A stretch of DNA of 64,000 bases from Marsupella aquatica (Eukaryota; Plantae; Marchantiophyta), in contig OZ316899.1 in NCBI GenBank assembly GCA_973895155.1, positions 16,271,974 through 16,335,973 on the forward strand, read 5' to 3'. Within the stretch, counting starts at the first letter, position 1. Each line of letters begins with the position of its first letter. Positions 13,955 through 44,602 of the stretch are shown piece by piece. The notes beneath the pieces were generated by a model. That model ran no database searches. It was given only the letters and a program-made list of their open reading frames with translations, and was not told the DNA's origin. A program made the translations under genes and the position numbers.

Positions 13955-14651
13955 GTAAGTGTCTCTTTCAACATATTTCTATTCCAATCTCTCGGGGGTC
14001 TCACTATATGGAGGACCCCCCTTCACCTGCGACGTTTTCATGCCTAGACCCCCATACTTATTAAGTTGAATTTTTTTCCTCCCTCTTTCTTTCTTCTAAG
14101 AGTCTAAAATCCAATTTGTATTGCCCCTATAATTTGTGAAGTAAAGTGTCACATATCAATAAAAATGCCTTGAAAGAAAAGATAAGTCTATGTCAGTACC
14201 TTGTGAAGTCGTATGTCAGACATGGCACGCCCTGCAACAGTTCTTGCACCTTTTTTGACCTTAAACTTTGATAATTTCAATGCATCATTTATATTGTGTA
14301 CCTAAAGGTCATCCCAATATAAACCTTACGTACATAAGTGGGATGGCCTTTAAGGTCACAACATGAATAATCCATTCCACCCATTGATCACCAATCCCAT
14401 GCTCCATCCATACTCCATTGAAAACTTCTATTGAGAGATGTAACATGTGATGGAGGGGAATTGAACCCCTAATTGAGAAAGGATCTCAAGTTGCCAATCC
14501 GTCACCCCCTATCCTATCCCACTACACCCACTAACATTAACAAAACAAAACATATATACAGACTCTCAAAAACTAAACAGTAGCATGACATTCATACCAT
14601 TGTTTGAATTAAGTCCTTCATCTCAACATATTTTTGGTCGGGAGTCTATGT

Positions 14652-14904
14652 TTAGAGTGGGCTAGCGACTAGAAACGGATCCAACACATAGATACGATCC
14701 ATAACCCCTTCTTTCATGGTTAAGCTAACACTAGCAATGACCATTTCAATATCCATCCATTTCAAATTAGTGGTATCATATCTGAATTCACTTTTGCTCT
14801 TACCAATAGGACTATACCAATTTAACAACAGTTCACAAATGCTACTTGATTGCCCTGCGAGTGGAGTTGGCCTATCCATCAAATCAATTGGTGACCGACA
14901 ATTG
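14652..14904 (-). pseudogene. C-terminus of the element B transposase, separated by CACTA C
   Basis: Removing 14905-30238 and one TTG gives the in-frame reading KYGSRWGN-CRSPIDLMDRP..LLNWY.. Confidence 0.88.
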
Positions 14905-16207
14905 CACTAGAAGAAAACGTCCCCTTTTGAGACCCTATGCTTTGTGACTTTAGGGAGACTTTCAAAAATACATGACTCCAAGTTTAGGGGAGTCATTGTT
15001 GTTACATTTTATCAACTGATTTTTGGGGGATATTTGTGAAAGTCATTCCTACAACTTCTGATAAAGTAGCAATTGTAACACTAGTAGGGCAGTCATATGT
15101 AAGTTGAATAAGCTACTCTCCATTACGGCATTCTGAAATAGAGTGCAAGAAGGATTACATGCACTCTAGACATCACGGAATGTTCCATTTACAACCCTTG
15201 ACTTGCAATTTGCAGAGTCGGGAGCACTAGGTGCACATAGAAGGAATGGGGGTTTAGGGTTGCAGAACTAGTTAAATGTCTTCATGTCAAGAGCATTGTA
15301 GCTAGTTATCCTAGCTAGCCTAATTAAACGTGCATGGGAGTACTTGCCTCTATAATAGTAAGTCTTATGCTGCTCAATGGATTCCTTAGAGTTCATGGGC
15401 AACTTTGACAAGAATATTGGGGTGATATCATTTTCAATTCAGGGCTAAAGTAGTGTCTGGCCCCCATTCTTTGTCCACCCTCCCTAAGTGGCATGTGTAA
15501 GGGTTAATTTACAGTTGCGTTCTAAGAGGTTACAGTTGCGTTCATTTAATCTTTGCTCACAAAGTGTCGTGTCCAATTTGCTTTAGGGTACTAACATGTG
15601 TATCAACGGCTCATGTCAACGCAAAGTGGTCAAGGCTCATTGGGTTTGGTTCACTAAGTGTCACTAAGTGTTAAGGTATGCTTTGTGCGTGAGTGTGCCT
15701 TTGGACACGAGTTTAGGGTGCGCGGGTTTTGTTTAGGGTTTAAACACGCTAGCAGAGTGCAAAGTTCAGTTCAATGTGCGTGGGAACTCGGAGGGTTTTG
15801 TTTCAGAAAAACTCACTTGTCCATTACGGGGACATTCGTCGTGCCTGAAGGTCGTCACATTGTGCGCGGTCTCACAAAGTGGGGAGTGTGCTTCGCGATC
15901 GGGGCAGTTCCTTCGCGTAGGGGAGTTTTGCGCTTGGAGCTTGAAGGTTTACCTTCAAAGCTCTAGAGCATTCAAGCTGAGAGGGCGACCGGCTTGCGGA
16001 GTGGAGAGGTGAGCTGCAGTGGACGATGAGCTCTAGGACTGGGAGGAGCTGTGGGCGGGCAGGAGCTGCAATTTGGGAGCTGCTCTGGCCGCCGGTCTGG
16101 CCGAGGAGCTACGAGCGGAGAGCAGCTGGAGTGGAGCTCGAGTGGAGTGGAGCTGGAGTGGAGTGCTTCTGTCACACACTGCTGAGGATTGCTACGTAGC
16201 TTCAGTT

Positions 16208-16500
16208 TGGGAGGCGGTGCGAGCAGAGGTGCTGAGAGCGGCTCAGGTGCCAAAGGAGGTGGTGCAAGCGGAGGTGCGAGCGGAGGTGCTGAGAGCGGCT
16301 CAGGTGCCAAAGGAGGTGGTGCAAGCGGAGGTGCGAGCGGAGGTGCTGAGAGCGGCTCAGGTGCCAAAGGAGGTGCTGAGAGCGGAGGTGCGAGCGGAGG
16401 TGCTGAGAGCGGCTCAGGTGCCAAAGGAGGTGCTGAGAGCGGAGGTGCGAGCGGAGGTGCGAGCGGATGTGCTAAGAGCGGAGGTGGTAAGAGAGGTGCT
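16208..16500. repeat. GC-rich tandem repeat (~57-bp unit built from 12-15-bp subunits)
   Basis: ggtgctgagagcggctcaggtgccaaaggaggtggtgcaagcggaggtgcgagcgga, about 5 copies. Confidence 0.9.
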
Positions 16501-18204
16501 ATTGGATCACTGAGAAGGCTACAACCTCTCTATCTTATTCCTACTATCTGGCGGTTGCAGTTGGAAGGAGGGTCGAGTGGCGAACATTTTGTCAGTTGAG
16601 GACTCAACTGCGGGTTTGTCATTTCTTGGAGCTCAATCGCTTGCTACTAAGACTACTATTGCTGCAATTGCAAGTTGCTTGATCATGAGCTACCTAGCTC
16701 CATTGTGAGTTGCCTCCCTATTCTCCTTGTTCTCCCTGTCTCCCCCTTGCTTGCAGTTACTATCGCCAGGAAGAATGTGTTTGGCCAAGATGCTAGATTG
16801 CGACTTGTCTTCTTGCTTCTAGCTCGTGTATATGCTGGCATCCGTGGGGGTTCCTCGAGTTTGAGTCTGCAGAGGAAGAGTCTATCATAGTCTAATTAAA
16901 TGTGGGCCATATTACTCTGGTCAATGAATGAGTTCCCTGGAAATAGAACCTCTCTGATTATAGAGGTGCGATTTGGTCAGAATTTTTTCCCCTCTCATTG
17001 TATCCACTGATGCCAACTCACTTTCATCACCTCAATTCTGAACAATGAGCGTAGTCTCAGGCTCCATACTGCCTATACTGAATGGTCTAGCTGCGATGTC
17101 CACCTCGGCTGAAGTGAGCTCTGACTTGGAGCCTTAACATTTGTGTTCTGTGGGGCTGATTAGAGTTGGTTCCGTCCAGAAGCTGCTCTACTGAAGTGAT
17201 AGAGCTCCGGCTTGGAGGTGGATCTTCACTTTTTTGTGGGTCTGAGTGACTTCTGTCTAGCTGGGCTTAGCTGAGTCAGTAATACATTCAAAAGAGGTGA
17301 GTATCCCTGACCAACATTTATTTACTCTTGACCACGCCAAACTAATGGCGCTTCAATTTGAACTTTCTAAGTCTGACTGCTGACTCCGCTCCTTAAAACC
17401 TACCTTAATTATATTCATGTCTTTCTTTTGTGCATGCGCATAATGTCTTTCATTCAGTTTAACATTAAATGTGAGACGGGGCTGCATCCAGCTCTTCTAG
17501 ATGACAAGAAGGCATTGATTAGTTGCTTTTTGATCTTTCCTCACCAAACAAGAAATCTTTCTTACAAGAAACCTGTCTTACAAGAAATCCAGCCTGGCCG
17601 AGAAGCTGCAAGTGGGGAGGATGTCTGTAGAAATTTGTAAGGAGTGGTTTGTCTCACAATGCCATTGTTGATGAAACCTTGCTTCTGCTGATGAAACCTT
17701 GCTTCTTCTTAATCCCATGCTTGCTGCCTTGTTACAATGTTTGTCTAGTTGACCGCTTCAGTGCCTATTCTTCATTTCCTGTTGTTCCATTTTTGGAAAT
17801 TTATGCTTAAGGAACCTGCATTTCCTTCCCTGTCCCCATGCTATCTCCACTGCACCTTCCACTGCTAGCTATGTTGATTCCTTCCACTGCTAGCTCTAGA
17901 CAATGATGCAGTCCAAATGCTGATCAGTCTCACTGGGGGTGCCGGTGCAGACACAACTCGCACTGTGTGATTGTAGTTTTGCTTTGTCGGGACGAATGTG
18001 TTTGGCTAAGATGCTAGATTGTGGCTTATCTTCTTGCTTCCATCTCGTGTATATTCAATTAGTAGAAGCTGGGAACGAAGTGAAAATTGAATTTCCTTAT
18101 ATTAAGCATCCTCACCTAGAAACTCAATACATAAACTCCTGGAGTCCCTTGGGACATAAAATGAGCCAAATTGTTTCAAAATTGGGAACCTGCACCCGCA
18201 CTAC

Positions 18205-18546
18205 TCAAACAAATGTGTTGGGCTTGGTGGCCTTGTAAGTCGTCTTTAGCTTTCGCGATGGAGGTTGAATCTTGCGGTACGTCAAGGGGAACTTGATCTT
18301 TGAATCATGGAACTGCTTGGTACTTTCTCGCTTGCACAGAGAGACAGGGACTGTCGTAGTCTTGATGATCTGGATGCAAGGGAACCAAACTCTATGACAA
18401 GAAGCCATCTCATCATACATCTGCTCTACAGTGATGTTCAATGTGGTATCACGATATTTCTTGTACATGTTGGGATAACCTGTACGACTCTGATACCTCA
18501 CCCAGATACCGAAGTTCTTAATTGTGGTGGGCTTCTTTTCGAAGAT
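18205..18546 (-). pseudogene. RPL18a: Captured last exon of 60S ribosomal protein L18a (eL20)
   Basis: [68 protein letters not shown]. It starts at a cAG acceptor. The N-terminal exons are absent and conserved residues are substituted. Confidence 0.93.
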
Positions 18547-19555
18547 CTGGTAGACACATTATTCAGCATTTGCTAACTTCGAAACTAGAAGGGTAACACA
18601 TTAAACAACAGAGAAACTCACAACATCCTCCTTTGGTCCTTCAGAGTCTGTACTTTGATTATGAAGTTTGACTGAGTTTCTGTTTACTGAAAGAATGTGA
18701 CTGTGTAAGAGTTCCGTTTGGCAGTGGATTGGTTGAAGCACTTCATGCTAGTGTGTTGTCTACAGCTCTTCAACCAGCTTTCGTCTTCCTTGTCTTTCAC
18801 CACTTACGATGACATCAATTCAGCTAAGACCATAGAAGGTTCCAAAGCATCTAACTTGTAAAATTGCATTCTGTTACATCAAGGACTAAGGTGTTGGGTG
18901 CCAAAGGAGACAGCACAACAAACACGCTGAAAAGACTTCAGGACTGGGTTCAACAAGGTAGTGAAGGTGCTTAGAGCCTAGTAAGTATGCATTCTGTATC
19001 TTTCTCTGTTGATGTGAGCTTGTGCATAATGGGAGTTGTAGTTGGCAAGAGTTCCAAATATGAATAGATCCAGAAGTATGTGATCATGTACTTGCTCTAT
19101 AAAGTTCTGAAGATATAAGCATTTTCTGTTAGACCAGGCAACTTGGGAGTTGGTAAGTGTCACCTGCATCTGAGGGGCTACACCGGGGGCATCAGTGGAG
19201 GTTCACTTGCACAACACGACAACCAGTGAATTTTCTCTTTGCTGCAACCTGCAAGGTGAGACTTTCGGTCTTTCTGGATGAAAAAACAGGATTTTAATAC
19301 GATTGATATACATGTCCGTCGAGAATATGGGTTTATCACCAAGCTCTTTGTCTTTAGGAAACTCATAAACTCAGAATCAAATATGTACTATGCACGTTTC
19401 ATGCTATGTGTATACTATGACCTGTAGTTGGAACCAAGACAATGAGTGGGAACTGATTAGTTTAGGTGGTTGCTGTTGGCGAGGCAAGTCGACCTCCTGC
19501 TCACCTTGCTCATCAAAGGACGTGAACAGAGGACATCACAACGAAAGCAACACTT

Positions 19556-19927
19556 ATGGTGAGGACCCGCAACGCTGAACATGTGCGACTTGCACGCAAG
19601 GCAGAGATGTTGCGCCTTGAGTATGTCAGACTTGGGATCCTTCCAGCCCAGTCTGCATGGTACTTTGAGTACCCTGTTGTTTCCAGGAACAACTACAGCC
19701 GGCCTCTACCTGCTTCAGTACCCTTCCCGACATCCTTGGTATTTGTGTCTCTTGTACATGACCCGCCACAAATTAGGTGCCAAGGGTGTGTACACAGTTG
19801 CCAATATGACTGTCCTGCCTGTAGGGCTTCTGGCCCAAAATTGGATGACCGTTCTCTTGGATGCCAATTTTTGCACAGAGCACAATGTATCATCTGGAAC
19901 CACGCCATCCTGCAGTGTGCCTGGTGA
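19556..19927 (+). CDS. Small Cys/His-rich hypothetical ORF (CACTA cargo)
   Basis: 123-aa ATG-started ORF with CQGC..C..CPAC..C..H..C..H; no family recognised. Confidence 0.3.
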   Translation: MVRTRNAEHVRLARKAEMLRLEYVRLGILPAQSAWYFEYPVVSRNNYSRPLPASVPFPTSLVFVSLVHDPPQIRCQGCVHSCQYDCPACRASGPKLDDRSLGCQFLHRAQCIIWNHAILQCAW

Positions 19928-20620
19928 TGTCACTTGTCCTGCCCTCCCAGACCCCACCACCGGTGACTTTGGTGTCTACACATGTTTGGATCACATGCTC
20001 TAGAGGACCACTTGTCACACCGCATGCACAGACCAGATACCATTGACCTATAGCTTAACACTCTGACTTCAACACAGAGGATATTTACTTAAAATTTTGA
20101 TGTATGAGCAATTTTGGGTCCAGGGTTTAGGGTCAACAGTACATAACTTATATCCTATTATGCCTGCACTAAGCAAAATATCCTAATTTAAGAGGCTAGC
20201 AAACTCGCATAAAAGTCTCTATTGAAAGACTGCTTTCATGACTGCTTTAACCTGGTGAACATTGCAACGTTCAATGAATTAATGGGCCATGTGATAACCT
20301 GTAAAATGTGATTTATGCATCACTTATTTGTCTCAGCCACTATCATAGCCTATTTAGGATGTATAAATTTCAACCCTTATGACACTGCTTCATACCAATC
20401 CTCTTCGAAGAATGCGCGTTTTACATGTCACGACTATTGTATGTGATTCAAATGCATGAAATGTTGTTGCAGATCTCCTTTGGTGAATCATAGCCACAAT
20501 TAAAATTGAGGTGTTGGTGGAGCAATTGTATTAGGGGATCAGGTTTGTGTGTGGGCTCAACATACCAAAAGTATGTCTGCTCTGCATCCTTGTGTGGCCA
20601 TTCCAATTCATTGCAGTAGC

Positions 20621-20764
20621 AAATGCCTTTGTACCTTAAATGCTAAATATATTTTACTTTCTGTGCAGTCTGCTAAATTGTAGAGTCTATCTAAATGCCT
20701 TTGTACCTTAAATGCTAAATATATATTACTTTCTGTGCAGTCTGCTAAACTGTAGAGTCTATCT
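20621..20764. repeat. 72-bp tandem duplication just upstream of the PHD ORF
   Basis: aaatgcctttgtaccttaaatgctaaatata...tgtgcagtctgctaaa.tgtagagtctatct occurs twice. Confidence 0.9.
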
Positions 20765-20775
20765 CATGCGCAGGC

Positions 20776-21456
20776 ATGGCACGACCTAAAATTCAAGCCA
20801 AAAAGCGTGTGACAGAGGTGAGAAACACAGGTGTACTTGGGGCAGATGCTACTAACTTCTCTGCAAGTCAGATTTTCCAGAAGGCAGCTCATTGTTGTGC
20901 CATTTGTGACGATGGTGGGGGCCTGGTCATTTGTGAGGGCCCTTGCATGAGGCATTTCCACCTCAACCCGGAGTCTGACCTTGCTGCAGAAAACAACTGT
21001 CCAGGGGTGGGCCTCCCGTCAACACACCAGGGAGACTGGATGTGCACTAATTGTTTGGAGAAGCAGGCTAAGTGTGCACAGTGTGGGAAGTTGGGGTCCT
21101 ATGAGGGCTCTGTTGATGCTGCAGCAAATGTTAGGAAATGTCCAGACCGTTTTTGTGTGAGATTTTTCTGTTTTGAGTGTTTGCCTGCTCATGCCACAGC
21201 TTGCCCACTTCATAGGTGCAAGGCATGTGGTGAGCATGATCATGAGTACTGGACTGACATAGTCCACTGTGCTAGGTGTCCCACCATGTGGCACTATCAT
21301 TGCCTGAAAGATCGTCAAGCAGAGGGTTATGCTTGTGATAGAGAAATCTATGATCACTCTGCACATGGTGTTGATCGATGGATATTTTATTGTCATCGCC
21401 ATGCCATTGATCCTACCTCGCGCACTCCTGTGAGAGATCACATATCTTGGCTGTGA
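20776..21456 (+). CDS. Stand-alone EDM2-like atypical PHD-finger cluster protein (226 aa, intact)
   Basis: CAICDDGG..CEGPCMRHFH, C.NC..KQ..C..CGKLGS, CPLH.C..C, C.RCPT.WH..CL and YC.RH.ID....TPVRDHI follow the EDM2 PHD region as I recall it, including the TPVRDH tail. Confidence 0.88.
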   Translation: MARPKIQAKKRVTEVRNTGVLGADATNFSASQIFQKAAHCCAICDDGGGLVICEGPCMRHFHLNPESDLAAENNCPGVGLPSTHQGDWMCTNCLEKQAKCAQCGKLGSYEGSVDAAANVRKCPDRFCVRFFCFECLPAHATACPLHRCKACGEHDHEYWTDIVHCARCPTMWHYHCLKDRQAEGYACDREIYDHSAHGVDRWIFYCHRHAIDPTSRTPVRDHISWL

Positions 21457-22231
21457 AGCTGAACATTGTACATGCACAATGCACCTGATGTGGATGTACT
21501 ATTTTTTGAGATTGCAGAGATTCCAATTTTGAAAAGGAGTTGGGTAGGCAAGTTTATATAGGCAGCACTTATCTTGTGCGCTGGCGTCAGTGGCTGGGTA
21601 CATGCCTATAAAAACTTATCCTTACAAGCCTTCTTGGAAGTATTTAGGCTGAGTGGTCATTTTCATAAACACTTTCATCAGACTGCTAAATTAAAACAGG
21701 ACTTCTAAGTTGTAAGCGTATAAATTATCAGGCATGCGATTAATCAAATTGCCCTATAAGTTTGTCATTGAACGTATCCTCCTTTACAACAAAATATGTA
21801 TGTGCCATGACAAGTTGGTTGCACTTCATTTCACCTTCGATATGGATTTTGTAGTATATATTCAAACAATGTCCTGCATCCGTGCAGGTGCCTAGTACGT
21901 ATTGTTCACATATCCCTTGTACCTATCAAAATCAGACCTGAGCACCAGTGGGCCAGATCAACTCAAAAAGCAAGAATTTTGTTGTCCTTGTATTGTCAGG
22001 TGAACCCATTCTTCCAAAATTCACTGTCATCACGTAGGGTGTGTGTACATGGAGCCTGGGAAACGTAGAAAGTGTGACCACCCAGCAGTGTTTACAGGGG
22101 TCAGAGCCATTTTGGTCCATGGCCAGCATGGGTTGACCAAAGTGCATTGGCCAACTATACAGAAACGATTCTCTGAGCTCCATGGCACTGTAGTTCAGGA
22201 CATCACTCCATAGACTACACATGTTGTTGCA

Positions 22232-22921: not shown

Positions 22922-23534
22922 GGAGTAGTAGCATCAGTTTGGACACAAGTTTTTTTGTATAAATCAGATCATTGAAATAAATGTGATCTTTGAACTAATG
23001 TACCTTGTTATGGTTGGTGGCAGTTGGGCTTATTTTACTGTTGGCGGATTGTTGTTTCCTGCTGCCTGGGGGTGTCACTGTAAACGTACTGGGTGGGCTC
23101 AAATCTCGGCGGTGAGATATCTGATACCGCTCTCACACCTATGCCTATGACTATACATGATTGGACTCTGATATAGTCATGGGTGTACATGCAAAGGCGG
23201 TACATTTGAGGACAGCTGTGGAGGTGGTGACACCCTCAAACATTGAGGAATTTTGTGTCATTCACTTGACAATAGGTACACTACTCGCAAACCTGTTTTT
23301 TTCTTTTGGGGTGGTTTAGGGTTTGTGAGAATTTATTACACGTTATGTTAACTCTTTTGGCACATACAGTCAGGGATATATGGAACACAAATACCACCAT
23401 TAGGCATCCCTGTTCACTGCTGTCCATGACTGCAGAGCTTCCAGCCTGTTACAATGCACCCTGGTCACCACCCTCCCCAAACCCAGCCCAGGGCACAGGC
23501 ACTGCCTTTGCATCATCCCACAAGGATATCACGC

Positions 23535-25520: not shown

Positions 25521-25676
25521 GTAATGTGAATTGTTTGCATGGACATTAGTGAGGGGAAGGATGTGTAATAAAGTAATTCTGAAGCAACACAGATGTATGG
25601 ATGGATGCCTGGTGATTGTGGTTGCATTGTGTTATACGGGGTGATCATAGATGACATGTTTTTGTGGTCCAGTAGG

Positions 25677-30230: not shown

Positions 30231-30238
30231 TTCTAGTG

Positions 30239-33200
30239 TTGCCCCACCTACTACCATACTTCTGTCTCATTTGGACAATCCGACCCAACCAAAAATATTT
30301 CTTACCTGCTGAGATTGCCTCCACCACAGCCTTATTCTTTCCTCCCTTTCTTTTTCCAGATCTAGTACTTGGAGCAGGATTATCATCAGACTCAAATGCA
30401 ATTGCACAATCAGTGCCAACATCAACAAAACATGAGTTAGGACTGGCTTCTTGCACTTTTCTCTTGCCAGTACTATAGTATAGCTCTTGTTTCACCCTTG
30501 TTAGCCTATCTTTTGACAAATGTGGATTGCCTACAGCATGGACAACTGATCCGAACACATGCCGAACTTCGTGACCTAATGTCTCAAGCTCATCTGAGGG
30601 GTCTACATCAAACTGTATATCATCTCTATGTACATCATCTGAATGCATCTCAGGAACGACAATGGGATCTGGTTCTATTAACCATGCATCTATTCTATTC
30701 AAATCATCCTCAAGATCTTCCAATTCATGAAAATCTCCAGTTGGGCGAGGACCTATGTCTGGTGGTTGGTGCTCTACTTGCTCCTCAGAATCATTGCAAA
30801 CAATTGCTTCCTTCAGAACCACCTCTAGTGGCCAGGTCTCACTTTCCACAACCCAAGGACATGTCCACCATCTCTTTCTAGCTGCTGGTAAGGAACTTTG
30901 TGGAGACATCTGCAATTGATGCATAAGATCCTTAGCAGCAACAAAACCTTCTTTAAGGGCTGCAACCACTAATTCATTAGTCTCAATGAGAGAATAGTCA
31001 AGTAGATTTGGTGCTTCCTCCCCTTCCCCTATAGGATGAATCTTCCCCCATACATGATCTTGTTTCTTATGTGAACGACCTATCTTCAAGCCTTCTGGTC
31101 CATATTCTAGGGCAACAAGCCAGTTCAGTCCAACAGCACTATCCAACAGAGAGCCAAAATCATAATTTTGCTCATGGCCACTCATGCCTCCTACCTTGTT
31201 GAAGAAAATCTCACAACAATCCGAACCTAGCAAGTGGAAGGGAACACCTAGATGTGGGAACTTATCTCGAAAGACACAAATTAACAGCACAATGAAATGA
31301 CATGACATGTTAACATCATGAAAAGCCTGAATAAACATCATGTCTTTCTCAGTGTGTGTTGCAAAGTTCCCACCCACTGAATGGTCACCAAACCTCAACC
31401 ACAATCTCCACAAACGTAGAAAGAATGAAACCTTGGATGCTAACACAATACGGGACCTCAAGTCATGAACTAGAGAAAAGAAAATATCTAAGTAATCTGC
31501 ACAAATCTCCAAGTAAAACTGAGTTCCTAAACTTCGTTCATGTCGTACATCTCTCCTCTCATACATATCTTTCAGACATTGCTGCACTCTTCTTGCTGCT
31601 ATTTGTTGTGGACCTGCCCAATTTTGCCAGTCAGTCCTATTCACATCATCCCAAGCCATGCCATGTTCATGAATTGGATAATGATTGTAGACATTAGCTA
31701 CATAAGATAAAGATGCATGTTGATCTCCTAGCACCAGTAAAGAAGACACTCTATCTAAGGGGTTTATCATCTTTTTCCCATTATGAGGTTGGTCTTGGTC
31801 ACCAAAGCCATACAAATCCCCATTTGGTAGAATTGAAACAGAGTATGTCCACCCTTCCCACCCAACTCCGTACCTTGGGTATGATCCATTCTACCCTCTA
31901 TATCTTCCAACATCAACTTTCGGCGATGTGCATCACCATCACTAGCATGTCCAAGCAAAGGGCCTACCATAGCTCTACAATATTCATCCCAAAAAGCCTT
32001 TAATTGGACCCAATGCTCTCGCACCCAAGAAGCTGTGAACTTATTACAAGTTGGAAGTGCACAAACAGCCAATTTAGGTAAGGACTCATGCAGAGGATTC
32101 ACAATCACAACTCGGGCATACATGCACTTGGGGCATTGTTCAAATGTACTTACAATTTTATCATACCCCTCATCACCTTCACCAACTAGAATTTCCAAAC
32201 CATAGGAGCATACATGCTGCTCTGAAAGTCCACAGAAACCAATGAGAGTATCATACTTTGCCTCCCACCTGAAACACAGACATGCAATTTTTCAATATCA
32301 CAGCAATTCCAGCCAAGTGCTACTTGTAAAGTCATTAAAAAAACAATTGGAAAAATGTCCAGTTCCAATTACCTAGGGCGTTCTTTGATCCTTGTTTCAT
32401 CCTCAACAAAGATAACAGGCACATCCCCCTCAATGCCCAATGAGTGCTTTGCAGCAGACAACACTCTAGCAATCTCCTGAAAGGTTTCCTTCCGTAACCC
32501 GGTTTGAAAAGGTGTGAGTTTTGCTCTATCACATTTTAGGGTCACAAGGCTAGGGGCTGTCAAGTTTTGTGCAAAACAATGAGCAACTTGACATCCCCCA
32601 AATTGGAACATAGCCTGAGCAATAGCTCGAGTCCTATTATTGTAACGATTACCTTTTGGCTTCCTACCTAAATTGCAAGCTACATCCTTCAAGAAATCCC
32701 ACAAACCCTCCTTACCACCAAATGCACCATTCCTGTGTCCATTCAAAATACTCCTAAGAAACAATCTCAAATCCTTCCTGTCTGCTGCAACTCCTAACAA
32801 CTCCTCTAGTTTTCGTTTCTTGGTGCTCAAGGCACATACTTTCTGAGCCTGCAAAGCTAACAACCAATGCTCTTTTCGTCGCACAGAGTTCAGCTTGTGC
32901 ACTTGATCTCTTAACTCTGTGTTGGTCAAATAATCCAATCGTATACCACCAGCAGTGGTTTGACTCCCTCTATGGACTACTGCTTCCGCTTCCCTGTGCA
33001 CCCGTCCACAAAAATCATCTTCTAGTGTTATAGAATCACATTCACTACAAGATAGATTTCCAAATCCTCCTCCATTCTGTGATAACCTCAAGCAATCCTT
33101 GTGTCTAAAACAGCCTGCTATACTCACAACACAGTCTCTACTTGGATGGAAAACATCCAAGCAACAACTTGGCTCACAATGCCATGTAATTCCCCCATAC

Positions 33201-34456
33201 TGATCATCCAAAATGCCAGAAATATCATAAGATATACCCTTCCATAACACTCGAGGCACACCTCTCTCTACCCATAATCCCCAACAAAGCAAACTCAGAC
33301 CAAGATCAACAGATTCACACACACCTGAACCTGAACCTGAACCTGAACTACTGCCTGTCTGGGACCCATCATCTTTAAAGAACTTCAAAATCCTACTCTG
33401 ACCAGGATGTAGGTCCCTAGAATCAGTCCTCTTTGGCCTGCCCCTCTTCCCAGACCTCAAGGCAAGCATTTTTGTGTCATGCCTAGTCTCCAATGCATCC
33501 AAGTGATCTCGACTCACTAAGTGTGTCCTCAAATTGGGCTCCAAGGTAAGCTTCTTGGGGCACAAGTCAGTGTGAAGCATTCCACAGACAGTACAACAAA
33601 CCTTAAACAGGAAAGACCTGTTTGCATACTCAGGAGTACTGGGATCAGGAACAATAGAGAATAGTTTGCCATCATCCCCAAGCTCAACATTCAATTGCTG
33701 AACTATCTCAACGCCTACTTTGATGGCGTCTGCATGATCATATTCTGGCTTCTCAGAGATGTCTGCTACCTGAACCAAAGTAGAAGGAATGCCCCTTCTC
33801 CGACAATAGTTATCCTTGTGCTTATTGAAGACCAAGTGTTTGGTCTTAAAATTACTAAAGCAATTGGAGATGGATTTAGGGTTCTGAGAGTTGTGTGCAT
33901 TGCCATAAGTTTCCCTACATTCAAGACACTCCAGATGCCCTCAAACATCTGTTTCCTCATCCTAGGTACTAATTCTCCAATTGTGATCACCATAACTCTT
34001 CTTATGTACCCATTTCTCTAACCTCATCCACTCATCTTTCCATAGCTTGATGGGACATCTCCCATCAATTGACTCAAAAGAAGCCCTTACAGGGGAGGGT
34101 GCTGGTGCTGTTGGCCCTTGTTGTGGTGTCCCAGTATTTGGACCCAATGATGCAAGAGTGCAAGGATGACAGGGTACTGGTGGGATCCTCCCACCATCTC
34201 CAAGTTCTTGTTGTACAACAATAACTCTTCCATCCAGCTCAGACAGATCAATTAATTTCTCATGTACAAGTTTGACTCGACCAGGAAGTCTCTCATCCCA
34301 AAAATCAAAGTCAAAGTCTAGAGTAGAGGCAATACAAGCCCTAAAATCATGCAGGGTGTGTCCTTCTTTGAATGACAAAACACAGATTGGTAAATCAGCC
34401 TTGTCATCCCCAACTTTGCGTATTAATTTAACAGAGTTGAGTTTAGGGGCTGCCAT
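30239..34456 (-). pseudogene. P-element/THAP9-like DDE transposase with N-terminal zinc fingers (main part)
   Basis: ORFs 33962-34456, 32369-33835, 31767-32198 and 30103-31815 are consecutive pieces. Motifs in order: EDETRIK, HASDGD..RRK, QDQPHNGKK, DVNRTDWQN, GSDCCEIFF. C2H2-like CLEC..H and CTVC..H..H motifs lie upstream. Confidence 0.75.
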
Positions 34457-34653
34457 TGCAATACAAATCTAGAACATGCATAGCACCATTGCTTTTGGAG
34501 TCGATAACAAAAAGACCTGCACAAATACATTTGAAATACACACAATGCAAACACATTAGGATCTTCAAGAGATGCAATGACAACATACACATTCTCATGT
34601 AATATACATAATGTCAGCATACATTTAACAATAGAAGTGCTAATAGGCCAAAA

Positions 34654-34831
34654 TGTTATAATACATAGGTTAAGTCTAGACTTGGGTTATCTGGACACCT
34701 AGGATTAAGTTACCTTAACCTTAGGTAACTGCTGTAACTACCTAGACTTTGGCTTGAACCAACCACCATGTATATACTCCATTTGGAACTTGAAGGAAGA
34801 ACACACTTATCATTGTGTAGTTACTCAAACA
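34654..34831 (+). repeat. 5' LTR
   Basis: tgttataata...ctcaaaca; identical by eye to 40186-40363. Confidence 0.96.
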
Positions 34832-34845
34832 CGTTATCAGCACGA
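34832..34845 (+). promoter_or_regulatory. Primer-binding site, half-tRNA-Ile type
   Basis: CGTTATCAGCACGA follows the LTR directly. It is complementary to the tRNA-Ile anticodon arm (UCGUGCU-IAU-AACG, recalled) rather than to a CCA end. Confidence 0.75.
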
Positions 34846-35138
34846 TACGCTAGAGGCAATTTCTTTTCCAACATCAGATCTTGTGCAAGACAACGATGAA
34901 TCAAATGTGGGGCTGTTGAATGATTGAAACAAAGTTTATCCTTCTAAATTTTTTTTGAGAAAGGCTCACTTAAGCAAGTATCTAAGGATATAACCCGAAG
35001 AAGAAATTTGAATGAAATCCAGTGACTCCATTTACAAATTGGGAGAAATCTACAAGCGAATTCAAAATTGAAGCTTCATCAATTATCTGAGGAAGATTAC
35101 ACATAAAGTGATTTGAGGAAATTGCCAACATTGAGAGA

Positions 35139-38100
35139 ATGGCACCTTCGACAAGTACAATCAAGAAATTAAACTTTCAAGCACTAGATATAGATGGCTC
35201 AAATTACTTGTCGTGGTCACTGGACGTAAAGGCACATTTGGCCTCAAAGGAAATTCCCAATACTATTCTTACAAATGCAGGCCACACTTTACAACAAAAG
35301 GCCCAGGCATTGATTCTAATAAGACACCATTTAGCGGATTCTCTCAAGCTCCAATATATGAATGAATACAATCCTCGAATTCTATGGGAGGAACTAAAGA
35401 ACCGTTTCGATCACACCCAGACTATATTTCTCCCCTCTGCACGCCATGATTGGATTAATCTGCGCGTAGAAGACCACAAGTCAATTGCTGAATATAACAG
35501 TGAATTTTTTCGCATAGTATCTCAATTGACTATTTGCGGACACCCAGTAGGAGATGATGAACAGATAGAGAAAACTCTATCTACACTTCACTCCACAAAT
35601 TTAGTACTATCAACGTAGTACCAAAATATGAGGTTTACAAGATATTCAGAGCTAATTGCCCATATGCTTTTAGCAGAGAAGCATCAGCTTCTACTACTAC
35701 AGAATACAAAAGCTCGACCACCTGGCACCCTTCCTCCCCAAACACAGGTGGAAACTCATTACAATGCTCCACAAACAACACATCGAAATCAATCACGAGA
35801 CAGAAGAGACCAAAGAGGATCATATAGAGGCCGAGGCTCCCAGAGGGGCGGCCGTTTTCAATCATTCAGAGGAGGAAGAAATCAACTTTACAGAGGCAGA
35901 GGACGAGATAGGGGCAGATACAACAGCTCCAGAAATTCATGGAAACGGGACAATGGGTATAACCCACCGACAAGGAGAGCCGATGACTTTCGAGATAAGT
36001 CTGAAAACCCCCCTATCTGCAATAGATGTGGCACAAAAGGACATATTAAACGCTTATGTAGAGCACCTACACATCTGGTTGATCTTTATAAGCAAAGCTT
36101 AAACAGAGAAACATATGAATCTCATGGAGCATTTTTAGAAGCCCCTACCATCTTACCAAAAATTCACCTAGTCTCCCAACCAAATGAAAACCTGGATTCA
36201 CTAAATTGTTGCATAGTCGATAGTGCCACGTCGCACACCATTCTACAAGACCCAAAATATTTTAAATTCATAACTCCCTCCCACAGAAGAGTCACCACGA
36301 TAATGGGCCAATATCAACTAGAAGAAGGCCACGGCCCAGCTAAACTCATTCTACCCAATGGCACATACATACACATAAAATCTGCGATTTATGCTCCTAA
36401 AGCCACAAGAAATCTATTGAGCTTCAAAGACATCCGGGATAATAATTTGCACATACTCACCGATATAATTGACTCACCGGAGGTTCTACAAATTGTGGCA
36501 AAAACACCAATCGGTATACAGATAAAAGAGACATTAACTGCACTACCATCAGGGTTTTACACTACGAAAGCATATAGTTTTCATACAGAGCTCAAGAATA
36601 GCACAATTACAGAAATACGGCATAACCGGTTGGGCCACCCTGGCACAACCATGTTTTATAAGATCATAAAAGATTGCCAGGGCATCCCACCTACAGTACA
36701 CCCAAGATCACTCACATCTCCTTGCCTGGCCTGTTCAACAGGAAAGATGGTCACTAGACCAGCACCCTCAACCACAGACAAAGCCATACCGAGATTCCTT
36801 GAGCGACTTCATGCTCATGTCTGTGGCCCAATAGATCCCCCAAGTGGACCCTTCCAATTTTTCTTAGCTCTTATATGTGCCTCATCAAAATGGTCACAAA
36901 TTTCTCTCCTATCTACCCAAAATCTGGTATTTCCAAGGATACTTGCCCACATATTAACATTAAAAGCACAGTTTCCCGACAATCCTATCAAGAAACTTCG
37001 AGTGGATAATGCAGGCGAATTTATGTCACAAACATTTGATGACTTTTGTGTTTCAACAGGAATTGAAGCTCAATACTCAGTTCCACATGTACATTTCCAA
37101 AACAGAATAGCAGAGTCACTCATCAAAAGATTACAGATGATTGCTCGGCCCCTGCTTATGCAAACAAATCTCCCTGCCTCTGCATGGGGCCATGCAGTTC
37201 TCCATGCAGCTACATTACTGAAATACAGACCATCGGCTTTTAATTCAAGTACACCATACAATTTAGCTTTTGGTTCTTCCCCGAACATTTCCCATCTCAG
37301 AACGTTCGGCTGTCAAGTATTGGTCCCAATATTGGGGCCTAAGAGGACAAAAATGGGACCACAGCGCCAACCTGGCATTTATGTGGGTTTTGACTCCACA
37401 GCCATTATCCGCTACTTGGAGCCATCAACAGCGGACGTATTCAAAGCACGTTTCGCTGATTGCCATTTTTATGAAACTATTTTCCCCAAGTTGGAGGTGA
37501 CGAAAACCCATGGACACAAATTACCTAAAGATTTACGTTGGCAAATCCAGACTGGATTTTGGAATGACCCTCGCACACAACAAGCAGATTCAGAAATTCA
37601 ATGCACACTGCACCTTACAAGAATGATGGATCAACTCTCTGATGCTTTCGCAGACGCTGCTAAAGTGACTAGATCCCACATCCCAGCAGCGAACACTCCG
37701 TCCCGAATACAACACCTGGATCTAACGGCAAATCAAACAGAACCTCGAGTCAAACGTGGGAGACCAACTGGAGCAACAGATAAGCAGCCAAGGCAGAGGC
37801 GCTCCAAGGAGAACATACAGCCAGCATCAATCCCACCAATAGCAGAGATACTTTCTGAAACAATGCATCTCGAACATGAAGAAATTGCCATCAATTATCA
37901 ACATATAGGACAAATCTGGGATCGGCAGACCACACCTTTGGATCATACGTTTGTATTCCAAACATCACAAGATATCACTGAAGATTTACCTGATCCCAAA
38001 ACAATCCTGGAGGCTCAAAAACGACACGATTGGACAAAATGGGAATCAGCCATAAACTCCGAATTGGATTCACTAATATCACGTAAAGTATTCAGACAGA

Positions 38101-39738
38101 TTTCCCCGGTTTCACATGAAACCCACTTGACTGGATACAAATGGATTTTTGTGAAGAAGCGAAATGCAAAAGGTGAAATAGTGAGATACAAAGCACGACT
38201 TGTGGCCCGAGGATTTACACAAATCCCAGGAAGGGATTATGACTTGACTTATTCTCCAGTGATGGATATCATCACCTACAGGTACCTCATAGCATTTGCA
38301 ATACACTATAAACTTTCCATGCATCAATTGGATATAGTGATCGCATACCTGTATGGAAAACTTGATAAGAACATACAGATGGAGGCTCCACCTGAGCTGA
38401 TAAACATGCTTAAATACCATAGTGAGGGGGAGAACTTACCGAAAAGCCAAGAAGCTGGCCCTTTTGGCCACACAAATCATAATGTGCTACACAACACATC
38501 ACAAACATATGCATATAAGGCTTCTCCAAAGCCAGTGATAAGATCGAAAGCTTGTACAGCTCAAATCCGCTTTGCAATTCAAGTACTGTGCTCACTGTAT
38601 GGGCTGAAACAGAGCGGACGCACCTGGTATCAACGCTTTCAAGCAGAGATGATAGCCATGGGATTTACAAATGCAGATGTTGCACCATGCATATTCATTA
38701 AACGAGAAGGAAAAGAACTGATCATTATAGCAATATACGTCGATGATCTAAACTTGTTTGGCACTAGCAAGATAATGCTAGAAACAATCAACTTGCTCCA
38801 ACGTATTTTCAAAATGCAAGATCTGGGAAAGACAACATTCTGTCTTGGCTTACAGTTTGAGCACTTACCTCAAGGTATCCTTCTCCACCAATCTACATAC
38901 ACTCGAAAAATGCTCACAACATTCAAAATGATCACAGCAAAGAGTGTAAAATCTCCAATGGACCTGCGTTCACTGGATCGGAACAAAGATATTTTCCAAA
39001 AAAGAGAAGAGAACGAACCCCTATTGGGCTCTGAGAAGCCCTACCTATCTGCGATAGGCGCTCTCATGTTCTTGGCAAGCCAAACACGGCCGGACATCGC
39101 ATTTGCAGTGAACCTGCTAGCACGCCATAGCTCACAGCCCACCATACAACATTGGAACGGGCTTAAACGAATCTTCCGCTACTTGAGTGGAACAATTGAT
39201 CTTGGTTTACTCTACCCATCAGACATTGACATTACACTCTATGGATATGCAGACGCAGGATACTTATCCGACCCTGCAGATGCAAAATCCCATATAGGCT
39301 ACGTATTTCTTAATGGACCTACAGTAATTTCTTGGAAGAGCACCAAGAAATCTCTCACTACAATGTCATCTAATCATTCAGAAATAATTGCATTGTACGA
39401 AGCTAGTCGCGAATGCCTTTGGCTATGCACAGTAATAGACTACATTCTAGAAAACACAGGTATGTCAAAACTTACTTCACCCACTGTGATTTACGAAGAC
39501 AATAGACCATGCGTCGAACAGATAGCCGCAGGATACATCAAAGGTGATAAAACAAAACATATTGCTCCAAAATTTTTCTTTACATATGAACAATAGCATA
39601 AACAGATCGAAGTACAATGGATCCCTAGTCAACAGAACTCTGCCGACATATTCACAAAGGCTTTACCTCCTATCATGCACAATGAACTTACCAAAACTTT
39701 AGGGATGCGCAGCTTTACTTCACTCTTACAGGAATGAT
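35139..39738 (+). pseudogene. Copia gag-pol with two in-frame TAG stops (35616, 39594)
   Basis: Gag LDIDGSNYLSWSLD and CNRCGTKGH..C; protease IVDSATSH; integrase LRVDNAGEF; RT YKARLVARGF, LYGLKQSG, YVDD; RNase H GYADA, ADIFTK. Confidence 0.95.
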
Positions 39739-40185
39739 GAAGAAACCAGTTCAAGAAATCTTCTAATTCAGGGGGAGCATACACACCAAGCAACGGTCGA
39801 GAAAGATGAACAACGCAAAATACCGATCACCCTAGCTCTTACGACGAATACATTTCGACGCTGAAGTTGCATACTCCTGAACGCCGACTCTCGACCAAAG
39901 CACCCTGGCTACTTTTCTCAAGACAAGGAGCATCGAGAGAACGCGCGACCACGTGCGAATGAACAATATTTTACATAACTCTAGTTAACCTAGTAATACC
40001 AAAAGTAATCATAAAAGCTCTCATTATGTTTACACTACACTCCTATATTCAAACTCTTTTTTGGTCGGTAACACTCTTTCTCCCAGAAGAAAGCAGGGGA
40101 GTTTTAATGAGGTTACACCAATTATAGATCACCCAACATAGACTTAAAGTTATTGCAACACTTCTACCCAAATGTTGCAAGGGAG

Positions 40186-40363
40186 TGTTATAATACATAG
40201 GTTAAGTCTAGACTTGGGTTATCTGGACACCTAGGATTAAGTTACCTTAACCTTAGGTAACTGCTGTAACTACCTAGACTTTGGCTTGAACCAACCACCA
40301 TGTATATACTCCATTTGGAACTTGAAGGAAGAACACACTTATCATTGTGTAGTTACTCAAACA
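40186..40363 (+). repeat. 3' LTR
   Basis: Copy of 34654-34831, preceded by the purine tract aagggag. Confidence 0.96.
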
Positions 40364-40666
40364 CAAAACACTTTATAATGCAATCCGTCATACATGCAAA
40401 TGTATTCAGTGAAAATCATGATATACCATTAAAGTTGGATAAAATATCTTTGGACAAAATATCCTTTTCGCTTGCTTTTCTAACAATTCTCGAGGTTTAG
40501 TGCTTCTGCTCATCAAAATGCAGCACTATTAGTGACCTTAATTATGACAAAATGTCAACACTAATAAAATTGGGTACTACCACCCATGATGCAGCTTAAG
40601 TATTTGCCTTGCTCATACCCCACTGAGACGTTGAAACCTAAGTAATAGGTTTGTTCATTATTCAGA

Positions 40667-41314
40667 TCACTGGAGCCATGAAATGTGGTCCCTGATTGGA
40701 GTCTTGAGGTGTGGATCAATAGGATAACCGGGGCAATAAAACATCTGTCGTTGTTGTCCATGTGCTTCATGGTCCCAGATGATCCCTTTGCTTTTGATCA
40801 TCTGGAGACAATCTGTATGCCAGGCATTTGGACATCATAGACATTGTACCATGTTCTTGACCATCTGACCCTCAAGACTCTGATAACATGTCACACATGT
40901 ATGTAGTGGGCAGGACTTTGCATCAGCTACCAAACACCCAAAGCAATAATATCGTACACAAAAATGATCAGAGCATTTTCGCACAATTGTAGGTGACGGT
41001 CCCACAGTGCGGCACCCATAACACATGGCCTGGTCCTGGTTACAATTTGGGCAAAACCCTGGCTTCCCTCCATGATGGAGGGGAAGGACCACACTGGGGC
41101 AAGAGTCATTAGGGGCTTCATCTCCAACCACATAATGAAATTGCCCATCACAAATTACCAACTTCCCACCATGCTCACAAATTGCACAAACATGAGGGCT
41201 AGTTTGTAGAATCTCTTGCTCAAAGAACAACGGAATACGCAATACCTCTTCCAAAGAGGCTCCTCTGTCAGAGGACTGTGTTGCTTTCTTTATGTTTGAA
41301 GTCCTTGTCGGCAT
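40667..41314 (-). pseudogene. Second EDM2-like PHD-cluster gene (cargo of element B), one stop and one frameshift
   Basis: VCAICEHGG..CPNC..VRKCSDHFCVRYYCFGCL..CPLHTC..QCL*CPNAWHTDCL, then after a frameshift FYCPGYPIDPHLKTPIRDHISWLQ*. Confidence 0.88.
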
Positions 41315-41603
41315 GGTTCAACTGCAATCATCACAAAGCACATCACATATGAGGGGGACATGTATGATAGTGAGCAATCCATAGACAAAGATAAGGTTAA
41401 TCATAGCACCTGCTCCAATGATCTGCAAACCTCCCTCCCAGATGATTGAAGTCAACTACACAGTGCAACCTGAACACCCACCAACCAAGACATACATAAA
41501 TACAATGCCAACTTGCAAAACTTTGCCACATATATAATGGGAATGAAAAATATTCTCATATATCATGGATGGTACAATTGCAGCCTTGCAAACAAAGGCC
41601 TAG

Positions 41604-42038
41604 TCATATATGAACAACGCATCCATGTACTATCAGGGACTGCAATGTCAAGCATCCATGGGCTGTAACCTTAGCTTGATCTGGAATACTATCTAGGGCT
41701 ACAATATCAAGCTCAATTGAATGTGGAATACTATCAGGGACTACAATGTCAAGCGTGTTCGGGATGACAATCTTGCGTAAAAGACACTCATTTTGAGGCC
41801 AAATGGTTGGCCTTATACAAGAGCACTTCCAGCGACGTGTGACAACTTTGCCATGCTTTCCCATGTATGTCCTAGTAACAAGTCTTCCACGCATTTTCAA
41901 GCAGAAGCAATGGAACCATTCAAAATTCCCATCACCAACCCTGCACTTGACACAAGGTTCACACCAGCAGCATTCATCTGGATGCTGTAGAAGGAGCTTC
42001 TCATAATTTGCTTCTAATGTAATGCCCAATATAGCCAT
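41604..42038 (-). CDS. Hypothetical ORF with a degenerate ING-type PHD-like motif
   Basis: CCWC..C..C..EWFHCFC..RWKCSC. Confidence 0.4.
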   Translation of the reverse strand: MAILGITLEANYEKLLLQHPDECCWCEPCVKCRVGDGNFEWFHCFCLKMRGRLVTRTYMGKHGKVVTRRWKCSCIRPTIWPQNECLLRKIVIPNTLDIVVPDSIPHSIELDIVALDSIPDQAKVTAHGCLTLQSLIVHGCVVHI

Positions 42039-42869
42039 GGCACTATTTTTTTGTACTCGGTGAATGGCCAGACAATCAGACGTGCAATGACAGGCAACTT
42101 ACAATTCACTAGGTACACTATGTGTTCTAGCAAACTGCTTCACCACAAGTGTTGGTGCTCATGCAAGCGCTGATGACAACCTCTACAATTCCTTTTGCAA
42201 CCTGTGAACAAAATTGAAACCACCATTTCAATTTCTAAGTTTCAAAAACTTCCCATTACATGAAGACAACCAATTGGCCATGCATGTTACTACAGCAGTA
42301 AAAAAATAACCCAATCGCTCAACAGACCTGAATAGCTAACCTAAATAGGATCAAGTTCAGAATCCGAAATGGTAATGCCCTTGCCCAGAAGCTTGAGAAA
42401 CAAAAGAGAATTTAAAAGCAAGCACAAGCGTCATCTGTTACCGACCACGTCTTGACCAGGCCTGCCACCCAGTATGGCTGGAGGCTGTGGTCCCCCCTGA
42501 GTAAACACTTAAAGAATTCTTCTCTTCTGGATGACTTAAAGAAATCGCAGGAACCAGCCGACGGGACACCAAGGCATGTAATAGAGAACCAGATTTGTGC
42601 GGGTGTGTGGGGGACGACAGAAGTCAAGTTACAAGATTTTTTTCCTGGGGTCCAGCCCACAGATGGAGATCATGCAAGGTGGTCAATCATGGCAAGTGCA
42701 ATCGTTGGAGACCTGTACTCGCGGTTACTCTAACGATGCATCCAGAAAATGTGTGCATCAAGTCGTCGATGCGGACACAGAAGGAGAGATGAGTATGGAC
42801 AACGTCGAGACAAATGACGACAGTACTGAGCTAGTATTCGGCTGGGAAGTTGGAGATGGATCTCAGTAG

Positions 42870-42994
42870 TGGCTCCAAACCTTATCTACGAGGGCATGGT
42901 GAGCTCCGGAGGACAAAATACTCAAAGAGCTTATTGCCATTCACGGAGCTCAGAACAGGAATTTTATAGCTGAAAAGCTAAACGGGCAGATCAG
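42870..42994 (+). pseudogene. Captured fragment of R2R3-MYB exon 1
   Basis: RGH(fs)APEDKILKELIAIHGAQNRNFIAEKLNG(fs)SG followed by GT; resembles RGHWRPAED.KLKELV..YGPQNWN.IAEKL.GRSG. Confidence 0.7.
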
Positions 42995-43469
42995 GTGCCA
43001 CATCGTCTATGACCGCTACCAGATCGATTAGGTGTGCTATGCATGATAGATTTGGGCTTCAAACAGTAGCAAGCAAGCACGAGCGTCAAACAATAGCAAG
43101 CAAGCAAGTACGATCATCAAAGCAGGCACCGCCTACCTCCCGATTGAGCAACGCAACAATGCTCCACTCCTGGGACTCCGGTTTGAGATATTGCAACACT
43201 CCCTGCAGTAGCCACCTCCCATTTCAGCAAGCTAGCAGCTCCTGTTTCAGCAAGCAGCAATGCAACACTTTCGACATCCACCTCCCGTTTGAGCAACTAC
43301 AACGCAGCACTTGCATCAGTCGCACACCCGCCCGCACTCCTTGTTTGAGCAACAACACAGCAGTCACATAAAATTTCCATATTGTTTGAGCAAGCAACAA
43401 CGTAGCACACTCCCTCAACCACAGACAGTAGCGCACCCAAACAATCCAACCTTGCAGCGCAACACTGTC

Positions 43470-43990
43470 GACCGATCCTTCACTCCAAGCAGCAGCGCAG
43501 GCGAGAGCGCAACACTCTCGCTCGATCCTTTACTCCCACGTTCACTTCAAGCAGCAGTGCAGCCGCGAAGTCTCGCTCTCCCCTTCACTCTAAGCAGCGC
43601 ATGCAACTGAGAAGTCTTGCTCTCCCCTTCACTCTAAGCAGCAGCATAGTTGAGAAGTCTCGCTCTCCCCTTCACTCTAAGCAGCAGCACAGCCGGGAAC
43701 TCTTGGTTGATCCTTCACTTCAAGCAGCAGCGGCAGCAACGCAGCCAAGAGCGCAACACTCTTGCTTTCCCCTTCACTCCAAGCAGCAGCGCAGCCAAAC
43801 AACTCTCGCTTGATCCTTTGCTCGATCCTTCGCCGAGAACTCTTGCTTGATCTTTCACTCCAGCCGCAACAACAACGCAGCTCGATCCTTCTCCAAGAAC
43901 TCTTGCTTGATCCTTCACTCTAGCCGCAGCAGCACGGCAGCCGAGAGCACAACACTCTCGCTTGATCCTTCTTCACTCCAAGCAGTAGCA
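43470..43990. repeat. Degenerate ~40-60-bp tandem repeats near the end of element B
   Basis: Repeated cttcactc(t/c)aagcagcagc..ctc(tt)gct(t/c)gatc / ctcgctctcccc. Confidence 0.8.
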
Positions 43991-44602
43991 CACTGGTTTA
44001 GACCCCGTTTAGACCATTTGCTGCAAGGTACAAACAAAAGAGACTCTGTTGAGGCAAAGAGCGGGTGGGGCCAAAGGGATAGTGGAGGGAAACGACACGG
44101 GAGGAGACTGACAAGGGCCAATTGAGGTAAACGAGACACGTTAAACGGAAAAATTTCAAACTTAATCCCGGTCAAACCCTAAACGTGAGTCCCCACAAAA
44201 CCAGACCCACTTAAATCATTCTCAAATTCTTGCCATGTTAACATAAACATGAATTAGGAAAATATATTGGGAATGTTATGTGTGCCATGTGTACCAATGA
44301 CATAGTGACACGTGTACTTTACATAGTCCGACACAAAGACCCCCTAACTTCTTTGTATGCCTTCCATCTACAAAGTCAAAAATATTAATATCCCTATTGT
44401 TCTTACGAGTTGTCCAACATATAAAGTTGACCCTATTGTTCTTACACAAATCTTCTTAAGTCTTCCGAGAAACCCAATTAACGGACCCTATACTTTGTCG
44501 CACGTGATATGAGATTTTTGCGGAGTGAGACCCCCAAGTCCAATCTATGATCACAGTGTTTGACTAGCGTTGGGCGCTATTGACTCCCTCACTTGTTTTC
44601 AG

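Follow-up and report, generated by a model that had tools for sequence, protein, structure and literature searches.

The 64,000-nt stretch of the liverwort Marsupella aquatica analysed here (contig OZ316899.1, positions 16,271,974 to 16,335,973; hereafter the window) contains a single DNA transposon of 30,548 bp (30.5 kb) at positions 13991-44538. This element is very likely a degenerate autonomous copy of a cut-and-paste transposon family of liverworts, whose transposase is a distant homologue of the P-element and THAP9 transposases. The placement in the P superfamily draws on a fold match, on a catalytic signature string with a D(2)H motif directly behind a strand, on a P-type helix-turn-helix (HTH) that is weak for the window copy itself, and on target site duplications (TSD) of 8 bp. 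A THAP domain and matches to the Pfam models of the P catalytic core were not found in the open reading frames (ORFs) of the window or in 26 homologues.

Ends, duplications and copies of the element

The 15-bp terminal inverted repeats (TIR), CTCGGGGGTCTCACT on the left and CTTGGGGGTCTCACT as the reverse-complemented right end, were identical at 14 of 15 positions, and an exact 8-bp TSD, TCCAATCT, was present at both flanks. When 2 kb x 3 kb of position pairs were scanned for an inverted 12-mer with at most two mismatches and an exact 8-bp flank repeat, these ends were the sole pair returned. By our own calculation, chance alone would yield about 0.004 such pairs; a chance pairing of TIR and TSD was rejected. 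The element is interrupted by a CACTA/En-Spm transposon and a copia retrotransposon. Their removal, with one copy of each duplication kept, leaves 30,548 - 15,334 - 5,715 = 9,499 bp.

A second member of the family in the window is a non-autonomous derivative of 326 bp (miniature inverted-repeat transposable element, MITE). Its ends (CTCGGGGGGGGTCACT..) and subterminal sequence are clearly related to those of the large element, and with a 3'-type left end and a 5'-type right end the MITE is oriented like the large copy. Two complete copies were found in Riccia sorocarpa, an element of 9,178 bp with TIR CTCGGGGATGTCACT (15/15 identical; locus L002) and one of 12,189 bp with decayed versions of the same TIR (locus L004). 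All four complete copies from the two species were flanked by 8-bp duplications, and these were all different (TCCAATCT for the large window element, AAATCACA for the MITE, GATGTCTT for L002 and TGAGAAAC for L004). Calypogeia fissa (locus L003) has a full-length gene, for which a motif search located a 3' end with the exact 15-bp TIR of the window element and, 3 kb further on, a second element end with the same TIR. The TIR/TSD scan returned no complete end pair at this locus, and none within 10 kb on each side of the Riccia loci L005-L007.

Ten ends from three species could be aligned. C1, T2, G6, G7 and TCACT at positions 11-15 were invariant, C3 and G5 nearly so, and an inverted CAYSTGCGA motif was kept in all ten, located subterminally at both ends of the element. 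Two distinct subterminal types, 5' and 3', were recognised, and one of each is found in the MITE. An earlier note, made by reading the window sequence alone, had described 15-bp TIRs and an exact TSD 30.5 kb apart, an element of about 9.5 kb after removal of CACTA and copia, and a matching MITE, and had proposed to look for copies without an 8-bp TSD. The three descriptions agree with the present results, and each complete copy recovered has a duplication of this length.

The transposase and its fold

The gene structure was derived from tblastn with relatives; every search used single ORFs separately. On the minus strand, four large ORFs extend across 34456-30103 and one more lies at 14882-14652. 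Exon 1 encodes, in this order, the N-terminal domain, a C2H2-like finger, an AT-hook (GKRGRPKR), a Cys-rich beta domain, a long coiled-coil helix, the P-like HTH and the first catalytic D (EDETR). Splicing of the intron behind it gives ..RPRWEAKYD.., in agreement with ..PRIRWEPRRD.. of the Riccia homologue P0005. Exon 2 contributes a Cys/His insertion (GFCG..H.C), beta strands and the second catalytic D (SDGD). The following coding segment holds the D(2)H motif (DQPH) with KK, an alpha-helical insertion domain resembling a GTP-binding domain (GBD), the catalytic E in SDCCEIFF, a C-terminal domain (CTD), an acidic linker and the start of a C-terminal beta-barrel, the rest of which is encoded beyond the CACTA element. 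The homologue P0189 is collinear over the CACTA site, with residues 94-687 at 31920-30232 and residues 686-757 at 14900-14682, and the C. fissa gene covers the same coding stretch with no interruption at this point. The transposase thus rejoins in frame across the CACTA element, and its full length is about 1,450 aa.

The reading frame of the window copy shifts by 1 nt near 31902-31904, a TAG stop at 31891-31893 replaces an Arg of the relatives, and about 31 aa that are present in P0189 are deleted at 30546/30547. Two in-frame stops in exon 1 (33962-33964 and 33941-33943) are either lesions or part of an unrecognised intron, which puts the number of premature stops at one at least and three at most. 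As judged from its sequence, the copy at 13991-44538 is dead and cannot make transposase because of the frameshift, the premature stop or stops, the internal deletion and the CACTA insertion in the last coding part. The earlier note had proposed a transposase of about 1500 aa that rejoins in frame. The collinearity over CACTA supports this proposal, but the frame is broken even without the insertions; the frameshift, the stop codons and the intron had been missed.

The fold was assessed with the intact homologue P0056, which matches the window ORF with E 1e-29. An AlphaFold (AF2) model built from an alignment of 84 sequences, including the window ORFs, had a mean predicted local distance difference test score (pLDDT) of 79, with values above 90 in the core. 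Foldseek ranked the P transposase structures 6p5a/6pe2 at the top (E about 1e-9, TMt 0.71-0.72; 6p5a_A E 1.2e-9, TMt 0.71), with RAG1 as the next match (E 9e-4, TMt 0.35) and Hermes lower down (E 0.075). VIA-align superposed the model on 6pe2_A with a Z of 25.4 and a root-mean-square deviation (rmsd) of 3.9 Å over 423/456 residues (model 106-672 on chain 114-566), so that HTH, RNase H core and insertion domain all fall within the aligned span. A Foldseek-independent search of 48,161 representative PDB chains returned 6p5a_A with a Z of 25.2 (416/442 residues) and a runner-up with 8.3. The scores of the competitors were 8-11 for RAG1/Transib (HzTransib 10.9, in the run on the Foldseek shortlist) and 6.9-8.2 for Hermes, the latter with an rmsd of about 8 Å. 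For the window protein itself, a model of the 488-aa N-terminal ORF (pLDDT 80) found the HTH of 6p5a_A as its top match among the same 48,161 chains, with a weak Z of 5.3 over 64 residues (model 376-440 on chain 135-199); Foldseek with the whole 488-aa model returned nothing below E 0.3. The structural comparison hence favours the P-like assignment made in the earlier note over hAT and RAG1/Transib.

A divergent hAT element was considered as an explanation for several of these properties. Elements such as Ac and Hermes also make 8-bp duplications, have short TIRs, interrupt their RNase H fold with an alpha-helical insertion domain and are present in plants, and the C-terminal ..SDCCE..FS.. of the family loosely resembles the SE..FS motif of hAT. 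The poor superposition on Hermes stands against the high score for P, however, the motif here is D(2)H rather than C(2)H, neither BED, hAT-dimerisation nor any other hAT Pfam domain was found in the window ORFs and 26 homologues, and the termini do not fit the usual hAT consensus. We regard a hAT origin as the least probable of the alternatives, and barely credible.

With a threshold of E 1e-3, the transposase family comprises 761 representatives. Many are uninterrupted proteins 1,000-1,600 aa long, and none of those scanned carries a Pfam catalytic domain. Close named relatives came exclusively from liverworts (C. fissa, R. sorocarpa and R. fluitans), and a profile search with cluster look-up for named relatives of the wider family matched only metagenome or Logan records. 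The alignment revealed the motifs AEDET, GH.SDGDSRRR, DQD.IHN.KKLIN and GSDCCE..FS, in which EDET, S-D-G, D..H..K and E are invariant or nearly so. The earlier note had singled out EDETR, SDGD, QDQPHNGKK, D.QN and SDCCEIFF as catalytic motifs, and EDETR, SDGD, DQDQPHNGKK and SDCCEIFF are all present in the window ORFs. They fit the published signature of P transposases, D..D..[C/D](2)H..E, with D(2)H right after beta-5 (PMC8230255): in the P0056 model, D446-x2-H449 directly follows the strand 438-445. The spacing from D(2)H to E is 194 residues in the window copy, 183-195 in most homologues checked and 177 in P0125, nearly equal to 192 in the Drosophila P transposase DmTNP and 199 in hTHAP9 (PMC8230255).

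Placement within the P superfamily

The family shares with Drosophila P and the vertebrate elements THAP9 and Pdre2 the cut-and-paste organisation with short TIRs, an internal subterminal motif of binding type, the 8-bp TSD, which P elements are known to make (PMC7776569), and non-autonomous deletion derivatives. The protein follows the same order: a coiled coil, the HTH, an RNase H core into which an all-alpha domain is inserted after beta-5, and the CTD.

Several findings weigh against an assignment to P. The catalytic Pfam models PF21787, PF21788, PF21789 and PF12596 and the THAP domain (PF05485) matched none of the window ORFs and 26 homologues even at E 1-10, PDB sequence searches with single ORFs and with the 26-sequence profile were equally negative at the same thresholds, and no Pfam family matched the transposase protein when all window ORFs were searched up to E 10. 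The structural identity to P transposase is just 14-15%, and the principal support for the fold was obtained with a relative that shares about 30% identity with the window protein, not with that protein itself. The fold search cannot rank Kolobok, KDZ/Zisupton or CACTA, for which no solved structures exist. A Cys/His insertion of 50-65 aa between beta-1 and the second D, which P lacks, stretches the spacing from the first to the second D to 119-140 residues against about 70. The TIRs measure 15 bp and not 31 as in P, and the ends read CTCGGGG..TCACT instead of the CATGATG termini of Drosophila P. Further differences are the size of the element (about 9-9.5 kb) and of its protein, the liverwort hosts, and an additional beta-barrel at the C-terminus.

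These differences could also mean that the family forms a separate, unnamed superfamily outside P proper, either sister to P or between P and Kolobok. The unmatched catalytic profiles, the lacking THAP domain, the unlike termini, the extra Cys/His and barrel modules and the low structural identity agree with such a view. On the other hand, the entire P core superposes with a Z of 25, HTH and insertion domain included, and the signature spacing and the TSD length are P-like. Moreover, the homologue P0128 passes the Pfam model PF12017 for the P transposase HTH (23.7 bits, cut-off 23) with a match located N-terminal to the core. Apart from the accessory domains Tudor and C1_2 this was the single Pfam match among the long homologues, and as it was obtained for 1/26 members only, it is weak evidence for the window sequence itself. 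The neighbours of P0056 in the ESM Atlas (language-model features 0.90-0.97) were clusters from fungi (Basidiomycota), diatoms, parabasalids and arthropods. Members of the nearest clusters partly or mostly match PF21787, PF21788, PF21789 or PF12017, and the neighbours grade into clusters in which 13-45% of members match P Pfam models, which suggests a continuum rather than a gap. A separate superfamily is thus considered unlikely.

An affiliation with KDZ/Zisupton or Kolobok was compared through Pfam and duplication length only, because no solved structures exist for these groups. Zisupton elements have 8-bp duplications and large Cys-rich transposases, and Kolobok shares the D(2)H motif. Yet no KDZ or CxC Pfam match was obtained in the window ORFs and 26 homologues, and Kolobok inserts at TTAA with a 4-bp duplication, whereas four different 8-bp TSDs were found here. 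Membership in either group appears highly improbable, and a distant P-superfamily affiliation remains the preferred assignment.

The position of the THAP domain is taken by the C2H2-like finger, the conserved AT-hook and the Cys-rich beta domain, as the earlier note had anticipated for the finger, which is present in the structural model. The finger (CxxC..H-x6-H) gave weak structural matches to C2H2 fingers of the U1-C/SF3A2/TUT4 type, and the beta-rich Cys/His domain (residues approximately 178-284) matched no known fold in the structure search with the whole 488-aa model. A 35-residue helix (305-338 in the window model), coiled-coil or leucine-zipper-like, precedes the HTH. At the opposite end, the beta-barrel behind the acidic linker (P0056 residues 978-1095; 30241-30400 plus 14652-14903 on the minus strand of the window, where CACTA splits it) resembles the histone-mark readers of the BAH/Tudor/chromo kind with a borderline Z of about 7 (AIPP3, EBS, ORC1b, DNMT1 BAH1 and SHH1 SAWADEE), and a Pfam Tudor domain occupies this position in P0098. 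The modelled barrel may serve to anchor the transposase on chromatin and so target its insertion.

Fold, conserved triad and duplications together point to a DDE cut-and-paste reaction with 8-bp staggered target attack. In the mechanism we propose, an oligomer of the transposase would recognise the 15-bp ends together with the subterminal CAYSTGCGA at both ends. The N-terminal finger and the AT-hook would bind the subterminal motif and the HTH the inner TIR, the coiled coil would mediate dimerisation, and GTP may serve as a cofactor, as it does for P transposase, which cuts its donor DNA with a 17-nt stagger. Catalysis would reside in an RNase H-like core formed by the D in EDET, the D in SDGD and the E in SDCCE, split directly after D(2)H by the alpha-helical insertion, the presumed equivalent of the GTP-binding domain of P. 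The element would be excised and joined to its target with an 8-bp stagger, the repair of which would create the duplication, and the MITE at 4164-4489 would be mobilised in trans.

Associated features and implications

The features of the element are compiled in the following table.

Table. Features of the P-like element and its MITE in the M. aquatica window
Feature	Position	Strand	Basis and remarks
MITE, 326 bp, non-autonomous derivative	4164-4489	-	TSD AAATCACA at 4156-4163 and 4490-4497
8-bp TSD, left copy, TCCAATCT	13983-13990		Flank comparison
15-bp TIR CTCGGGGGTCTCACT	13991-14005	+	3' end of the element as the transposase gene is read; same as C. fissa L003 ends
Subterminal motif CACCTGCGAC	14024-14033	+	About 18-19 nt inward of TIR; candidate transposase-binding site
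Last transposase coding segment (C-terminal beta-barrel domain)	14652-14903	-	Severed from remainder by CACTA; stop at 14652
Nested CACTA/En-Spm, 15,331 bp, TIR CACTAGAAGAA	14907-30237	+	Ends, TSD and Pfam
Transposase coding, frame -2	30241-31902	-	Alignment with relatives
Transposase exon 2, frame -3	31903-32268	-	Ends at 1-nt frameshift near 31902-31904
Intron, GT-AG, 104 nt	32269-32372	-	Sequence reading and splice check
Transposase exon 1, frame -1	32373-34456	-	ORFs and alignment with relatives
Nested copia LTR retrotransposon	34654-40363	+	Long terminal repeats (LTRs), TSD, RVT_2 ORF
Two Cys-rich (PHD-like) ORFs	40835-41314 and 41604-42038	-	Upstream of transposase, same strand
Subterminal direct-repeat arrays, families D3-D9	43400-44000		Repeat listing; periods about 43-60 bp
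Subterminal motif CACGTGCGAC	44497-44506	-	5' end of the element
15-bp TIR CTTGGGGGTCTCACT (minus-strand reading)	44524-44538	-	5' end of the element
8-bp TSD, right copy, TCCAATCT	44539-44546		Flank comparison

The nested CACTA element is flanked by the 3-bp TSD TTG (14904-14906 and 30238-30240), and its ORFs contain the TNP2-type Pfam domains Transpos_assoc, DUF4218 and DUF4216. Within it, a 57-bp tandem repeat in 4-5 copies of 74-96% identity (16213-16509) translates on the minus strand as a proline-rich repeat (..PPLAPEPLSAPPLA..). The copia retrotransposon sits between the transposase start and the Cys-rich ORFs upstream of it. Its 179-nt LTRs are 100% identical, its TSD is CAAAA (34649-34653 and 40364-40368), and its gag-pol ORF with RVT_2 is uninterrupted (1322 aa). 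This looks like a very recent insertion, and from the state of its ORF and LTRs the retrotransposon may still be active.

The first of the two Cys-rich ORFs has a counterpart upstream of the transposase in C. fissa L003 (8397-8690; 33% identity, E 6e-7), and a Pfam search gave no match for either (40835-42038). On sequence grounds they may represent an accessory gene or 5' exons. The dense direct repeats with the core CTTCACTCCAAGCAGCAGC are located in the 5' subterminal region; they could act as a promoter or as binding sites, or simply form a minisatellite. In the R. sorocarpa copy L002, the N-terminal DNA-binding region of the transposase is largely missing, and between transposase and 3' end this copy has two further called genes (593 aa on the plus and 188 aa on the minus strand; 13968-17628), which could be captured cargo or a nested element. 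On the metagenomic contig L001, which encodes P0056, an ORF of 587 aa without Pfam domains (2-1765) lies directly upstream on the same strand and may be a second gene of that element.

DNA transposons of land plants usually belong to hAT, CACTA, MULE, PIF/Harbinger, Tc1/Mariner or Helitron, with Ginger and Sola as rare additions; to our knowledge, P-type mobile DNA is not normally listed among them. P-type elements have been described from animals and a few fungi (Pucciniales, Allomyces) (PMC5751038; PMC7776569). In a 2025 survey of 1,007 plant genomes with a Pfam screen that included P, recently active clusters were reported from only seven superfamilies, which did not include P (PMC12973397). 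The liverwort family would escape a Pfam-based P screen because its catalytic core matches no Pfam P model. Our literature searches found no P-type elements in liverworts or other plants, which is not evidence of absence, and judged from the literature the chances that this family is unreported are about evenly balanced.

We tentatively put forward a wider interpretation, which we consider plausible without leaning towards it: an ancient THAP-less clade of the P superfamily in liverworts, missed by standard profile screens, with ends conserved across Jungermanniopsida and Marchantiopsida, a C-terminal barrel like that of chromatin readers and, probably, a partner ORF of PHD-like type. In that case it would be the first P-type cut-and-paste family to be documented in land plants. 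Some copies may still be active, given intact ORFs such as P0189 and the perfect duplication of the MITE.

Elements of this family, 9-30 kb long, and their MITEs are probably unclassified or misclassified in the annotations of liverwort genomes. If the family is indeed unreported, the host range of the P fold would reach land plants and the THAP domain would prove exchangeable. How general the GTP-binding insertion domain and the long staggered cut are could then also be studied in a second lineage, one very distant from the first. If the wider interpretation is true, the liverwort clade would in addition offer a natural way to test whether dependence on GTP is an ancestral trait of the P fold.

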